NCBI GenBank assembly: GCA_964035545.1
Contig: CAXIUT010000076.1
Location: 1 to 19,843, forward strand
DNA length: 19,843 nt
DNA from: Bugula neritina
Taxonomy: Eukaryota > Animalia > Bryozoa
Direction: 5' to 3'
Part shown: in pieces, positions 1-19,843 of the stretch
Position numbering within the stretch: position 1 is the first letter of the stretch
Layout: each line of letters starts with the position of its first letter
The notes under the pieces: model-generated
What the model was told of the DNA's origin: nothing
The model's input: the letters and a program-made list of their open reading frames with translations, nothing else
Database searches by the model: none
Translations under genes and position numbers: made by a program

Positions 1-79
1 CCCAACCCCAACCCCAACCCCAACCCCAACCCCAACCCCAACCCCAACCCCAACCCCTCAACCCCAACCCCAACCCCAA
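1..79 (+). repeat. Left telomere, (CCCCAA)n
   Basis: Tandem CCCCAA from base 1, with one variant unit (cccctcaa, 54-61). This is the Tetrahymena-type ciliate telomere repeat. Confidence 0.99.
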
Positions 80-4293: not shown

Positions 4294-7200
4294 ATGTTAC
4301 CAAGGGGAAATACCCAGGCTTCACGCCTTTGGAACGTTCAAGACCCAGGATAATCATACGATATACGCAAATCTATGATCGCTAGACTTCCTGACCATCC
4401 TCCTAAACCAATGGGCGAACATCTTTAATTGGTCTGTCTTCTCCAATCTGCATAAATAGAAAGACTTTCAGATTATCTGACTGAAATACAAGCAAAATAT
4501 AAAGAAATTTAACGTAAATAGTACGACAGACATTCTTATGAGGTTCAAATCAAATAGTTAGCTGAAAAGAATTTAATCTATGCCTCACTTAAAACTTAAA
4601 ATGATCGATTGAAAGATTTTATTCGTAGACAAACTCAGGAACTTTAGTAGTTACAGAAACTTCATCTTCAGACTATGAATGTTTAAGCTTTGCAAGCAAA
4701 GTATGAGGAAGTTTTACGTGAGTTACGTATTGCACGAGAGCAAACAGAAAGGTCTTAAAATCATGTAGTAAAACTTAATTATGAAATAAATGAATTAAGG
4801 ATAAGGTGTGAAAGATTTGAAGTTTAAAAAAATACTTTAAGAAGTCAATTTGAAAATCAGATTAAAGAGAGAATAGCTATAGAAGTTAAGATGCATCGTG
4901 ATCAAAGTGAATAAAGAAATAATAAGTTATTGATAGAAATTAAGCAACTAAAAGAATATTTGGAAAGCAAAAATTTATAAATTCAGCTTCTTAATTCACA
5001 AAGAGAGCAACTAATAAGAGAAAAACAAAGTTATTAATAGAAAAATCGTAGTAGAGGAAATATAGAAGACTCTCTTAATTAAAGAAATAGATAAATACAA
5101 AAATTATCTATGTTACTTAATTAAAAAAGTAGCAAATTAGATCAAACTGATGCTTCTCTTCAAAAAGCTATTAGAGATTTCAAAATGTTATAAGAAAGGT
5201 ATCTTTCTGAGCAAAGATAAAAATAAAGCATATTAATTAAGCTAAGATAATTAGAGCAAATAAATAAAAAAAATTAGGCATTAGATAAGTATGAAGATAG
5301 AGTGGCTATGATGTCGATGGAAATATAAAGACTTAATGGATTAAATTCTAACAAATCAAGATAGTGTAATTAGCTGATAGGTTAAATATAAAGACTTAAA
5401 TCTGAGCTTACAAGAAATAAAGTTCTAATTGAACAACTATAGAGATAGAAAGGTCGACTTCAACAAAATCAAACTGACATCCAAATAATAGCATCTCATG
5501 AAAGTAAAATACATCATTTAACTCAATAACTTGAGAGAATAACTTTCCAACTTAAAGCTAAAAATGATTAAGTAGTGACTCTTCAACAAAAGTTCATAAT
5601 AACAGAAACAAATAACTCTCAAATGGCTGCTTTGGCTGCAGATAAAAGCAGACTTTAACAATAACTTCAAGCATCGAAAACATAGTTAAGAAATTATAAA
5701 ACTATAACTGAGAGTGAAATAAATACATTGAAATCTGAATGTAATAAACTAAGAAGAGATTTTGAGTTACAATCTTCAAATAAAGGAGATGTTTAAAAAT
5801 ATAAAACAGAGTGTTAGAGAGTGAGAGTTGAACTTGAAAGAGTGAGAAATTAATGCATTAATTTAAGACGAAATTATGATTAAGAAAAAATAAATAACAA
5901 TCGATTGATGGGCTAAAGAAATATATTAATTTAATAAAATAAAAAGTTTGGATTATAGTTGACTCAACTTCGTAGAGATATTTAGTAGTTAAAAATGGTT
6001 GCTTATGACTATCAGTAAAAAGATAAATTGGTTCAAAGGTTACAGTCTGAACTAAAAGATTCAAATAATCGTAGTTCTCAAGTTGAAGGTACAATGGAAA
6101 GTATTTATAAGTAAGTTTAAAGGTTGCATTCAGTGCTTTCATCGAAAACTAATGAGTTGATTACTATGGCTAAATAAAATAGTCAATATGATGAAAAAAT
6201 TAAATTTTTAGAGGCTAAATTAACTAATTTAAATAATTAGAGATAATATTATGAAAAGGAAATGAAAAGATATAAATCATAGTTGTAGGTTAATTCTAGA
6301 AGTCAAAATTAATATAATTAATTATTAATAGTAAAATAGAAATGTGAAGGAATATTAATTCAAAAAGATAAATTAATTCTTGAGCATATTAAAGATAAAT
6401 AAATGTTAGAAAAACAAATAATTGATCTTCAAAGATAACTTTCTCAGAGAGTTCCTCTTCAAGAACAAGTAACTAAAGATTATAAAAAAGTAGTTTAAGA
6501 AGTAAGAACTAAGGAAACTATTATAATTAATCTAGAGACAGTTATTAGATAGAAAGATAATGAAATTAGAGAATCAGGAGAAAGAGCGAGAAAATGGGAA
6601 GGTAAAATATTTTAATGGGAAAATCGTCTTAAAGATGCATAAAGAAATATGATGCTTAAAGATCAATAAATAAACAGACTTAATTAATAAATATCTAGAT
6701 TAATTAGAACAAAAAAAGAATAATAATTTAAATTTAAAGATCTTGAAAAGATTTCTCAATAAAATTTACTTCTTAAAAGAAGACTAGAATAATTTTAAAG
6801 GTCAAAAGTCAGTGGGTAAGATAATTTAAGAATACAGATTCAAAGAGCTGAATAAACTATCAAATTAGAACGTTCTGAAGCTGATAATTTGAGAAGACAA
6901 CTAAAAAGATTATAAGAGTTGATAAACAACCAAAATATTGAAATTTAGTCTTTAAGAGAGAGTATAAAGTAATATCAGATGAAGATTATGCATATCTAAA
7001 ATACAAATAATAAAGTTTTACAGTAAAAGCTGAAAGAATATTAAATAAAACTTGCAGATAGAGATCATTTGGTCATAACTCTTCAAAAATAGATCAAACA
7101 TTTGGAAACTCAGTTTAGTACTTATGTAGAAAGAGATAGGTTAGCTCTTGGTAATTTATCTCAATATGAGGAGAAAATAGCTCTTTTATCAACCGAATTC

Positions 7201-8419
7201 GATAGATTGAATAGAGTGGTAGAGGATAAAAGTCGTTAATCAAAATAGAAAGATAGATTTATTGATGAGTTGAAGCTTCAGTTAAGTCGGGTTCCTCATC
7301 AATAAAATTCAAATTCATAGCAATATAAAATCGAGATAACAAATTTAAAAATAGCATTAGAAGAGCTATAAAATATCAATTTACATACTATTGCTTAGAG
7401 AGATGAGCTTTTTAAGATATCTCATGAACTAAAGACAGAATATGATTAAAAATTGGCAAAAATAGATTAATAATGTAGAAACATAAAAAATTAATTGCAG
7501 TTCCGTATTTAATAAAATAGAAATATTGGAGAGGAAGTTAATGTTCTCAGAAAAAAATAACAAAATTATCTTATACAAATCAGGTAACTTGAAGAATTAG
7601 CATCAAGAAGGCAAGAAGATCCTAATTTACGAAGAAAAATAGCTGAACTTGAACAGATATCAGCTTCTTATACTAGAAAAATCAATTAATTAAGTATTGA
7701 GAACACCAATCTTAGGACTGAAGTTAATCAGCTGGAAATAATGATTCAATAACATAAGAGTCGAGGCGACACTGCATCTCGAAATGAGGTTAATTCTTTA
7801 ACAATCAAAATTAATTAATATATGCAGATTATTAGTAGCAAAGAAGAGGAAGTAGTGATGTGGGAAAATAAATACACTTCGTTATATTCTGCTTATGAGG
7901 AGCTTTATACTAACTATAATTTGACTAAGTCAGAATATGAGATTACAATGACTAATATTAGAAGTTATGAGTCTAAGTAAGTCTCTATTTATGTAGAATT
8001 CTTCAGCTTTAAGAAGACTTTTCAACTTTAAGTGAAGCTCTTAGAGGATCTAAAATTTAAATATAAAATCTGAGACAAGAAAACTATTCTCTTAAAGTCA
8101 AGTTACAAGGTGATTCAGATTTAGTTTAAAAGGTAGTAATTATGTAATTTAGAACCTTCTCTTATCAAAAGAAATTGATCGATTAACTTAAATCAATAAA
8201 AGAACTCAAAGTGATATATCGGATACAAGGCTGAGATTAACTGATAATGTAAGTTTAAACAAAAGAATGGAAGAGAATATGGCACTATTTGTTGTTCTTT
8301 TTGCTGAAATTTAATCTTTGCGTTCAAGACTTGCTAATAGTGAAAGAGAATGTGAAGATGTGAGGAGAAGTAGTCTTGTTCCTCTCAGAGTTGATAAGAG
8401 TATGGGTCCACGACCTTGA
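4294..8419 (+). CDS. Large (1361 aa) coiled-coil protein, probably ciliate cortical/cytoskeletal; introns 7977-7996 and 8133-8152
   Basis: A 3.68-kb first exon with no in-frame TGA under TAR=Glu. Two 20-nt GT-AG introns restore the frame to TGA 8417-8419. Recurrent motifs: YEDRVAMMSMEIERLN, HESKIHHLTQELERIT, YEEKIALLSTEFDRLN, LLLSKEIDRLT, LFVVLFAEIESLR. Confidence 0.92.
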
Positions 8420-10451: not shown

Positions 10452-12158
10452 ATGAGTGATCTCTAAGAACAAATCAAAACTAAAAATAAACCTCTCAGTT
10501 ATGAATAGTTGATAGTGATGATTAAACATCAATATAGTAATTTGGATGAAGATGATCTTCATGCATTGATCTAGGTACATATTCCTAAGGGAGAGTAGAT
10601 GCCTGTAAATGAATGTTTATTTTCAGTTGAAAGCATGAGAAGAGATGTGTAGAAGTTACAGCCACGTAAGAGTGAGTTGACTTGTTTCCATGTGAATTCA
10701 TTGATGTGTATGCGTGATGGTGGTATATATATTTAGAAGTTGGATATTCCCACATAACTTGATGTTAATCTTGAATTCAAAGATATTGTTGGATAGGACC
10801 TCTATAAAAACCTTATTAACTATGCTTCTGTTGGTCTTCTTTTCTTGAAGTTCTAGGAAAAACCTCATAGGAGATATACTTTTTTCCAATGGGTTTAGTA
10901 TAATCTAGACCTTTCTATCTACTAAGATGTTAATACCCCTTATTTACTTCTTCTCAAACAAGTTTGGAGCTTTAAGTTTCGTCAAGCTTTATAAACACTT
11001 GAAATGATTCGTGCTAAATTTCCTGAAGATGAATAAGTGAGTAGTCTCGAGGTAGGTTTAAATATTTTTGTTGAAGTTTGTAATACGATGATGCGAAATT
11101 AAGAGTTGAAGGAAGTTTTTGTGGATCGTAAGTAATTTGGAATTAAGTTTGAAAGTGAACATAATAACAAAATTTAATAAAAATACTTTAATAGCAGTAT
11201 TAATGAGATTAAGCAGCAATTGTTATTTGCTTCAAATTATTTTTATTCTCTTAAAAATCATTTCAAGAACAAATGTTATCATGCTATAGCAATATTTTTG
11301 AGCAATCGTGAAGATAACTATTTGAGAGAAGCTGATCCAACTATACATCTTTAATCTTTTTCGATAGTTGATAGATTTTTCTATGCCAAACGGTTTTATC
11401 GTTCATAGGACTTTTAAACTCTCAAAAGACAACTTTTATAAAATTATATTAATATATCAAGACTTGACTATATCATGCTTTTTGGAACAAGAAAGGAATC
11501 TTAACAAATTTTACAAAATTATATTGACTAGACTAATGAGTTAAGAACTGTTGCATTTATAAGTGTTCTTTTAAGAATCTTTCTAGAACAAAGTAGAATG
11601 GGATCAAAAGATACAAAAGTATCTCTTTTTAACAAATTTATAAAATGTTATTAATCTTTACTAGTAAATATGGATTCTGGAAAAGCAAAACACAATTTCG
11701 ACAAGAAGTGTATTTCGATATAAGTATAGCGTAAAAAAAAGAACCTAAGCAAGACATATTCATTTAATTGTATTCATTGTAAGGCAAGTCAATGTTTGTT
11801 GTCAGTGACTAAGAGGATAGCGATAGATGCTAAGCAATATCAGTTGCGGATGAAGGGGAATAATTTATATTCTAAAGATCAGAGGAACCAGGTGATGTAT
11901 TGCCTTGATTGTATGGAGTTATTGCCTAAGTGTGCGGTTTGTTTGTACCCAATAACTGTCTATAACGGTTTTGCCTAGGAAAATAAAAGAAACAGCGTAA
12001 ATGATAAACTTAAGAATAGTGGATAGGCTTTATAAAATGCATTGGTTTGGTGTCCTAAGTGTTTTCATGGAGGACACTTTGAACATTTAATGGACTGGTT
12101 TAAAATTTAAGAAAAAAAATGTCCTGTCTTTAGTTGTAAATGTAAATGCACATTTTGA
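10452..12158 (+). CDS. MIOS: GATOR2/SEA complex MIOS (Sea4)-like protein, 568 aa, alpha-solenoid plus C-terminal Zn-finger/RING
   Basis: Intronless frame to TGA 12156-12158. FSIVDRFFYAKRF, RLDYIMLFGT and ILQNYIDETNELRTVAF resemble MIOS solenoid motifs. CIHC...CLDCMELLPKCAVC...VWCPKCFHGGHFEHLMDWF...CPVFSCKCKC is the GATOR2 C-terminal Zn-binding signature. Confidence 0.82.
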
Positions 12159-12293: not shown

Positions 12294-13003
12294 ATGTTCA
12301 TCAAAGAAGCCGTTGTTAGTGCTAGTCGTAAACTCTTTCCTGAGAAGGAAATCGCTAAATGGAATCAAGACATCTTCTTGCAATTTCTATTTTTCACCAC
12401 AGTACTTTATCCTTGATTTAGATAAAGAACTATTTCTATAGTTGGCTTCCAGAAGATAATCCTTTCATGATTCCTCAAACTGTCAGAGAAAGAACAAACA
12501 AAAACAAAATTATCTTGGTCTTAGATATGGACGAAACTTTGGTTTATACAAGAAGAACATCATGTCCTCCTCATTCCAACTATATTAAAACAGATGTAAG
12601 GATTCTATTTATTTAGATAAAAGGATAAACTATGTTTGTTGAACCTAGACCTCTTGTTAAACATTTTTTAGAATCAGTGGCTGAAATATTTACTATTTAT
12701 GTTTATACAGCTGGTGAGAAAAAGTATGCGGATTCGGTTCTTAATGTTCTTGATACAAAGAATTTGATTGAAAAACGATTTTACAGAGATTCTTGCAAAA
12801 AACAAAATGGAACCATGATCAAAGACCTCAAATATCTGAAAAAAACATTAAGAACCAAACAGGAAATGGTCTTGGTTGATGATAATTCTATGTCAATTAA
12901 CAAAAACTATCCCTTTGCCATTCAAGCTGAGCCCTTCGAAGGAGACCAAAAAGATCAGGAGTTATTGGCTATTTTCAGCAAATTGTTGAAATTCTACATC
13001 TGA
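12294..13003 (+). CDS. NIF/FCP1-SCP family HAD phosphatase (~222 aa); introns 12402-12421 and probably 12596-12616
   Basis: Motifs ILVLDMDETLV (DxDxT), PRPLVKHFL, VYTAGEKKYA, YRDSC, IKDL and VLVDDN. A hydrophobic N-terminal segment is present. Stop TGA 13001-13003. Confidence 0.92.
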
Positions 13004-13019
13004 TCAAATCAATCAATAA

Positions 13020-13809
13020 TCATTCTTCTTTTTTGTCTTCACTTAGACCATTTGCCTTTAACAGATCTTTAATTCTTTCTTCACTCATAGTATCTCCTTT
13101 GATCTATTCATCCATGTTGAAAGAAATCGACACAAGTTCAATTTTTTTAGGTGAAGGAGTTGTTGTTTCCATTGTTTTTACAAGAGTTTTCAAAGCGAAT
13201 CCAAGTCCATCTTCTTGTGAAAAATCTTATTTATACTCTTGCTTCAAAAAAGAGTTAGCAGCTATATGGTTGCTACCTATGGCTGTAGCCTTCCATCCAG
13301 CATAGTTTCCTGAAGGATCTGTGGAATAGAGTTGGAACTTTCCTTGCTTATCGTAGCCAGCAAAGAGGAAAGCAGCTCCAAAGGGTCTTGATCCTCCCAT
13401 TTGGGTGTAATATTGTTTAATATCACAAATATAGACCACAATTTCTTCGATAGGAATGCTTGAACGATATTTGACTCTGTGGTTCTAAATAGAGGTGTAA
13501 ATACTTGGGCGTGTTCTCTGAGAAGGTTGATGAGGTAGTTAGCATCAGCAGATAGTCCAGAAACAACACAGTAGAGATGTTTGTCGATGGCATAGATCTT
13601 TTCTGAGACTTTGCTTTGTTCGAGGAGGAAGGAAGCTTCGTGTTTTTCAGTAGCTAAAACTACTCCTTATTTGGTCACGATTCCTGGGTAAGTAGATAAT
13701 TACCAATAGCTGATCCAGTTTTGTTGATGGCTTATACAGCATATTATATTTGTTGAAGGCGCCCATCAGGAGTGAAAGTTGTGGTTCTTGAGTCATATCT
13801 TCTTGACAT
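13020..13809 (-). CDS. PSMA4: 20S proteasome subunit alpha-3 (PSMA4/Pre9), 249 aa; introns 13684-13703 and 13485-13504
   Basis: [49 protein letters not shown]...CDIKQYYTQMGGSRPFG...FQLYSTDPSGNYAGWKATAIG. Two 20-nt introns are required to keep the frame. Stop TGA 13022-13020. Confidence 0.97.
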
Positions 13810-13991
13810 TTTTAAATATTTTTCAAATCAATTTTATAATTATCAATTAAAAGGTTAATATCTATTGAAATGATAAACAACTGAAGATATTAAATAAAAA
13901 AGGAGTTATTGATCAAAGGTATTATTTGATAGATTTGAAAAGTTTATTCTATTGATTAAATTTTATTTGATTTGGATATAATATCTAAATA

Positions 13992-19022: not shown

Positions 19023-19620
19023 ATGTTTAGAGCTTTAAAATTGATCACTAAGTGTTCATCAGCTAAACCTTCTCTAGGATTTCAGGCCCTTCATAATAAA
19101 CAAATAAGATAGTAGATATAGCAAAGAGGAAGTCCAAAATTAGATGCATTGGTAGATGTTTTACTATCACTATCAAATCGATAAACTTAGTATCTCAACC
19201 TTCTGATGTCATAAAAAGCACTTAATAATGGCAAAATTATCCTTCATAATAAACTAATTAATTCAAAGGATACAAATTGAACCTCTTTAATATTTTTATC
19301 AACAAGAATGGATTAAAAAATAATGGAAAGATACAGAGTTGTTGATGTTTATTTTATCATCTTAGATGTAATAAGCTGGAGAATAAGTTGAAGTTGAAGT
19401 TATTAGATAAAATTATGATGTTGAATTGACTAGTTTGGATGTGTCTCAGAAAATTAAGATTATTAAATCTTTAAGAGAAAGATTTAGTTTGGGATTAAAA
19501 GAGGCTAAAGATCTAGCTGATAAAGCTCCTTCTATGTTGCAGAAGAATATGAAAAGAGAGGAAGCATAAAAACTTCAAAAAGAACTCGAGGCTGCTGGCT
19601 GTGTTATCACTCTCAAATGA
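19023..19620 (+). CDS. MRPL12: Mitochondrial ribosomal protein L7/L12 (bL12m), nucleus-encoded; one apparent frameshift before 19278
   Basis: Presequence-like MFRALKLITKCSSAKPSLG, N-domain-like SPKLDALVDVLLSLSNRETEYLNLL, and C-domain YDVELTSLDVSQKIKIIKSLRERFSLGLKEAKDLADKAPSMLQKNMKREEAEKLQKELEAAGCVITLK-TGA. Confidence 0.9.
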
Positions 19621-19682: not shown

Positions 19683-19843
19683 GGGGTTGGGGTTGGGGTT
19701 GGGGTTGGGGTTGGGGTTGGGGTTGGGGTTGGGGTTGGGGTTGGGGTTGGGGTTGGGGTTGGGGTTGGGGGTTGGGGTTGGGGTTGGGGTTGGGGTTGGG
19801 GTTGGGGTTGGGGTTGGGGTTGGGGTTGGGGTTGGGGGTTGGG
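19683..19843 (+). repeat. Right telomere, (GGGGTT)n
   Basis: Tandem GGGGTT to the end of the sequence, the reverse complement of the left telomere. Two G5 variant units (19767-19771, 19834-19838). Confidence 0.99.

Follow-up and report, generated by a model that had tools for sequence, protein, structure and literature searches.

What do the TAA and TAG codons that lie in frame within the genes of this locus specify? The question arises from a proteasome alpha-subunit gene in which a preliminary description of the DNA had noted four in-frame TAA codons, from which it had proposed that TAA encodes glutamate and that the organism uses a code in which both UAR codons mean Glu and TGA is the sole stop. 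We analyzed the window, by which we mean the whole stretch of DNA of 19,843 bases, together with homologous contigs from related organisms, and treated TAG separately from TAA throughout.

C4A2 repeats open the window and G4T2 repeats close it, so that both of its ends are telomeric. The window is thus an entire ciliate macronuclear chromosome of small size, running 19.8 kb from telomere to telomere and carrying several genes. A few variant telomere units are present (CCCCTCAA and GGGGGTT). The G+C content of the window is 24–34%, and if TGA alone is allowed to stop translation, extended reading frames rich in TAA and TAG appear. Five of the genes in the window are confident, and together with the telomeres they are arranged as follows.

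1..79, no strand: telomere, C4A2 repeats
about 4294..8073, plus strand: long coiled-coil gene, with 74 TAA and 25 TAG in about 1,259 codons and TGA only at its end
10452..12158, plus strand: gene whose product has a zinc_ribbon_16 domain (Pfam PF17034) at its C-terminus, with 17 TAA and 13 TAG in frame and a TGA end
12422..13003, plus strand: 3' part of a NIF/CTD-phosphatase-like gene (Pfam PF03031), with one TAG and one TAA in frame and a TGA stop
13020..13809, minus strand: proteasome alpha subunit gene of the alpha-3/PSMA4 type, 249 codons plus TGA in three exons (Pfam PF00227 on two pieces)
19228..19620, plus strand: bacterial-type L7/L12 ribosomal protein gene (Pfam PF00542), aligned to E. 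coli rplL
19683..19843, no strand: telomere, G4T2 repeats

The PF17034 match of the zinc-ribbon gene is to one piece only, weak and under the curated cut-off. The zinc_ribbon_16 domain is known at the C-terminus of GATOR2-type WD40 proteins; the protein encoded here has about 570 residues, and its searched pieces gave no WD40 match. The bacterial-type L7/L12 gene is presumably mitochondrial. The NIF-like gene on the plus strand and the PSMA4 gene on the minus strand converge at 13001–13022, where 16 nt separate their TGA stops, a gap into which two 3' UTRs would barely fit unless they overlap. A tRNA gene search returned none in the window and none in ten related loci, an Rfam family search of the window gave no match and no rRNA, and the gene for eRF1 is absent from the window.

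The PSMA4 reading frame runs from an ATG at 13809–13807 to a TGA at 13022–13020 on the minus strand. Its two introns and its in-frame TAA and TAG codons are given below, with the codons found at the same positions in relatives (L001 and following) and, where available, in alpha-subunit chains of the PDB.

13684..13703, minus strand: intron 1, 20 nt, GT..AG; its removal restores collinearity with the PDB chains, and it is absent exactly from contigs of the runs X3 and X4
13485..13504, minus strand: intron 2, 20 nt, GT..AG; it is absent exactly from the X3 and X4 contigs, and the Pfam profile runs on across it (15–69, then 70–154)
13744..13746, minus strand: TAA codon 22, first Glu of QVEYAxEAI; GAG in L004, L005, L006, L010 and L013, TAA in L001, Glu in the PDB chains
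13732..13734, minus strand: TAA codon 26, second Glu of QVEYAxEAI; GAG in L006, GAA in L013, TAA in L001 and L004, Glu in the PDB chains
13667..13669, minus strand: TAA codon 41, one residue before chain residue 42; GAA in L001 and L006, TAA in L004 and L013
13227..13229, minus strand: TAA codon 181; GAA or GAG in all four relatives compared
13104..13106, minus strand: TAG codon 222, part of the C-terminal tail, which is variable; three close relatives have CAA or CAG (Gln) and L013 has GAG

The introns at matching sites of the relatives are 25 and 25 nt long in L001, 20 and 20 nt in L004, L005 and L010, and 20 and 21 nt in L006; L013 has a 17-nt first intron and the second is missing.

The meaning of the N-terminal TAA codons can be read from solved structures. 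The stop-free pieces of the PSMA4 protein align without gaps, and in collinear order, to alpha subunits of the alpha-3/alpha-4 type: the first piece corresponds to chain residues 1–21, and the piece after the third TAA begins at chain residue 42. It follows from this gapless alignment that the first three TAA codons occupy positions 22, 26 and 41 of the chain, the first two of them coinciding with the two glutamates of the QVEYAxEAI signature in the solved subunits. The relative L013, which comes from an NCBI assembly, carries GAG at codon 22 and GAA at codon 26; its stop-free N-terminal 36 residues align with the signature, and in each of the five alignments shown, to plant, Plasmodium, Leishmania and yeast subunits, both positions are Glu. 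At codon 181, Glu is found in 39 and Asp in 13 of the 69 database fragments that span the site. The four TAA codons of the preliminary description thus stand at exactly the positions it gave, and its assignment of two of them to the signature glutamates is borne out; to these we add the TAG at 13106–13104. It had also pointed to a TAA in L7/L12 (19567–19569), and this codon does align with a Glu of E. coli L7/L12 (...DDAEALKK...). The motif EI*RLN, which it cited from the coiled-coil protein, is present, but it is weak as evidence for Glu, and we set it aside.

To extend the comparison beyond single sites, relatives of the window were collected; these are uncultured organisms from metagenomes, plus the one NCBI assembly. 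A word search with an 85-residue piece of PSMA4 returned 86 proteasome fragments, many of them 80–96% identical to the window protein. All 86 are partial, with 48–148 residues against 249 in the full protein, as is expected if public gene callers stop at TAA and TAG. In 16 cases a fragment ends opposite a Glu of the window at an internal position (178, 186, 201 or 230), and Glu makes up only 6.8% of the window protein. Contigs were fetched for several fragments and aligned codon by codon. In this alignment the PSMA4 orthologues have GAA or GAG opposite the window TAA at codons 22, 26, 41 and 181, and the exchange also runs in the other direction: at codons 63 and 92, which are GAA or GAG in the window, one relative has TAA and another TAG, and at codon 178 TAA is found. 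The PSMA4 genes of the relatives are about 75% identical to the window at the DNA level and their proteins are 87–96% identical, from which we conclude that the swaps between TAA/TAG and GAR behave as synonymous changes under purifying selection.

A second gene, the zinc-ribbon gene, could be treated in the same manner: when metagenomes were scanned with part of it, two orthologues spanning its full length came up (L011 and L012), which share about 57% identity with it and can be aligned over about 570 codons. Tallies were pooled over PSMA4 and the zinc-ribbon gene. As the relatives evidently have the same code, their own TAA and TAG codons are uninformative, and we counted only their sense codons, with GAA and GAG scored as Glu; several relatives contribute at each site, and the pooled counts are not mutually independent. 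Opposite window TAA, the relatives' sense codons specify Glu in 26 of 34 comparisons, Lys in one, and Gln and Tyr in none. Opposite window TAG, they specify Glu in 13 of 20 and Gln in three, all three of the latter at PSMA4 codon 222. Counted per site, with the zinc-ribbon TAA codons 12 and 15 dropped because they lie upstream of the likely ATG (10452), the result is as follows.

Window TAA, 21 sites: 14 with a Glu codon in at least one relative, 3 with only TAA/TAG, 4 with only other residues
Window TAG, 14 sites: 10 with a Glu codon in at least one relative, 2 with only TAA/TAG, 2 with only other residues

In a log-likelihood comparison whose substitution profiles were derived from the alignments that gave the counts, both codons are best read as Glu; Asp comes second, 43 units behind for TAA and 23 units behind for TAG. 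Two JGI metagenome contigs, L008 and L009, were left out of the tallies since they are too divergent for alignment at the codon level. In a rough DNA-level alignment they show TAA opposite the window Gln codons 20 and 123, and this homologue probably belongs to another ciliate, one that reads UAR as Gln in the usual way. The evidence on the code thus comes from orthologue tables of two genes and from a single site in one more, L7/L12.

The use of stop codons across the window completes the picture. In the five confident coding sequences, TAA and TAG together account for 145 of 2,400 codons (6.0%) and, read as glutamate, for 145 of 324 Glu codons (45%), with TAA (104) almost as common as GAA (129). 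TGA is wholly missing in frame from these 2,400 codons, whereas the two alternative frames contain it 58 and 110 times. Each of the five genes terminates in TGA, so that the earlier proposal of TGA as sole stop holds for the confident genes of the window. Wherever the end of an orthologue is readable it is a TGA at the same position, as seen for PSMA4 in L001, L002 and L004 and for the zinc-ribbon gene in L011 and L012.

Contigs from four sequencing runs were compared over window positions 12950–13900; no run that carries the stretch is recorded as RNA. Two of the runs, X3 and X4, which belong to two other studies, each contain one contig of about 720 bases that covers nearly the whole PSMA4 coding sequence and is without exactly 20 bases at both intron sites. 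These contigs differ from the window at 13–14 positions, none of which falls within a TAA or TAG codon, and all five such codons are kept. Most of the differences also occur in the intron-containing contigs of a further run, X2, and are thus strain alleles. Since both introns are missing to the base, the contigs from X3 and X4 look like spliced transcripts of a closely related strain. Read as transcripts, they confirm both introns and indicate that the mRNA still carries UAA and UAG, which makes RNA editing unlikely.

Several other readings of these codons have to be weighed against glutamate for both. The two codons could have parted, with TAA meaning Glu and TAG another amino acid such as Gln; this would be a new code, a split of the reverse kind to that of Oligohymenophorea sp. 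PL0344. We tested TAG apart from TAA because an oligohymenophorean with UAA = Lys and UAG = Glu is known (PMC10553269), and because the sole TAG of PSMA4, codon 222, stands opposite CAA or CAG in three close relatives; the preliminary description, moreover, had offered no evidence on TAG. Codon 222 is, however, a variable site that by itself is uninformative on the meaning of TAG, and a single CAG to TAG transition, replacing Gln by Glu, would suffice to explain it, with L013 having GAG there. At the TAG sites of the zinc-ribbon gene, by contrast, GAA or GAG is found in a relative at 9 of 13 and CAA or CAG at none, and the log-likelihood favors Glu over Gln for TAG by 27 units, so that we regard a divided meaning as very unlikely. 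A uniform reading by one of the other known ciliate codes (UAR = Gln, UAA = Lys with UAG = Glu as in PL0344, or UAR = Tyr of the Mesodinium type) has in its favor that Gln would be expected by default from the C4A2 telomeres and from a chromosome of oligohymenophorean appearance, and that TAA is one base change away from CAA, AAA and TAT. Against it stand the TAA codons at invariant Glu positions of the alpha-subunit signature and the near absence of Gln, Lys and Tyr among the 34 sense comparisons, so that TAA does not lie mostly on Gln or Lys columns in these two genes, the pattern on which the earlier reading would have foundered. The converse comparison agrees: TAA and TAG of the relatives fall on 17% of the Glu and 6.5% of the Asp codons of the window, but of its 196 Lys and 104 Tyr codons they hit none, and of its 74 Gln codons one. 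As judged from these alignments, Lys, Gln and Tyr are excluded as the meaning of TAA and TAG in the genes compared, and we give almost no weight to another known code.

Nor is it credible, to any appreciable degree, that the codons are edited to sense in the RNA or that the genes are pseudogenes. The recorded run types leave room for such an explanation, but the X3 and X4 contigs, in which both 20-nt introns are gone, retain every TAA and TAG, the outcome opposite to the editing that the preliminary description had named as contrary to its reading. Pseudogenes would further have to account for the excess of amino-acid over DNA identity among the PSMA4 orthologues, which points to purifying selection, and both editing and pseudogenes are at odds with an in-frame TAA/TAG load of this size combined with complete avoidance of TGA. 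Context-dependent codes do exist in ciliates, in Condylostoma and the karyorelicts (PMC4967479), and one could suppose that UAA and UAG mean Glu here yet act as stops at some gene ends, or that UGA also encodes Trp. The first of these is opposed by the TGA at the end of all five window genes and at the same positions in the PSMA4 and zinc-ribbon orthologues, and the second by the lack of in-frame TGA and by the conserved Trp of PSMA4 (AGWKA), which is encoded by TGG; an ambiguous code is accordingly quite improbable.

Taken with the homology to solved structures and the codon swaps with orthologues, on which the assignment of TAA to Glu now stands, and with TAG shown separately to have Glu in a relative at 10 of its 14 sites, the locus is very probably read with a ciliate nuclear code in which UAA and UAG both specify Glu and translation terminates at UGA alone. 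This code is that of the peritrichs, NCBI table 30, which the preliminary description had named. By analogy with other reassigned ciliate codes, decoding would rely on tRNAs derived from tRNA-Glu with UUA and CUA anticodons, and on an eRF1 that recognizes only UGA.

The same assignment, UAR = Glu with UGA as sole stop, is established in the peritrichs Campanella umbellaria and Carchesium polypinum (PMC10553269; see also PMC11687900), and table 30, which also covers Vorticella and Opisthonecta, shows no difference from the code of the window, whose membership in Peritrichia we infer. Like the organism of the window, peritrichs are ciliates with C4A2 telomeres of the oligohymenophorean type and with tiny introns of narrow length range; three peritrich genomes are reported to have narrow intron-length distributions similar to that of Paramecium (PMC13685798), and the introns of the window, fixed at 20 nt, agree with this. 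Oligohymenophorea sp. PL0344, a freshwater oligohymenophorean, shares UAG = Glu and UGA as the only stop with the window, but reads UAA as Lys and has a median intron of 57 nt (PMC10553269), whereas window UAA is Glu and its introns are 20 nt long; the PL0344 organism and code were rejected for the window on these two grounds. In the standard ciliate code (table 6; Tetrahymena, Paramecium, Oxytricha) both UAR codons are likewise reassigned together and UGA is kept as stop, but their meaning is Gln rather than Glu. Outside the ciliates, the nonstop code of Blastocrithidia also has UAR = Glu (PMC12153298); in this trypanosomatid, however, UGA is reassigned as well, to Trp, and UAA doubles as a stop, while in-frame UGA in the window is found only at gene ends.

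The preliminary description held that the code also places the organism taxonomically. The C4A2 telomeres and tiny introns do fit an oligohymenophorean and a peritrich, and from code, telomere repeat and intron size together a peritrich placement is plausible; the taxonomic claim is in this respect only partly supported. It is unlikely that the lineage lies outside Peritrichia or represents a deep, uncultured freshwater branch of the peritrichs. Were that the case, UAR = Glu would have a second origin, or one far older than has been assumed, and the genome would be an extreme case, with TAA and TAG making up 45% of Glu codons, introns fixed at 20 nt and multigene chromosomes of 20 kb. As it stands, the code is one already described for peritrichs, and its presence here is a fact of annotation and no discovery; no new principle of stop-codon reassignment is added. 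Its practical consequence is that the genes of this genome and of many metagenomic relatives need to be translated with table 30, as public gene calls now break such genes at each TAA and TAG.

The chromosomal setting of the PSMA4 gene varies among these organisms. In a DNA-level alignment of the window with the contigs of L001–L005, only the PSMA4 gene aligns, and the neighbors of PSMA4 in L001, L006, L013 and L018–L020 differ (CKS, AAA ATPase and WD40 genes), with none matching the window. Chromosome content seems to have been reshuffled between close relatives. In L018–L020, no more than 3 kb separates PSMA4 from the end of a contig. A protein atlas returned only generic eukaryotic proteasome clusters for the proteasome protein. 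Close relatives are widespread in lake and other metagenomes (proteins P0001–P0105; loci L018–L025), and their genes are everywhere called as fragments broken at TAA and TAG; a single 90%-identity cluster comprises 61 members, on contigs of up to 190 kb.
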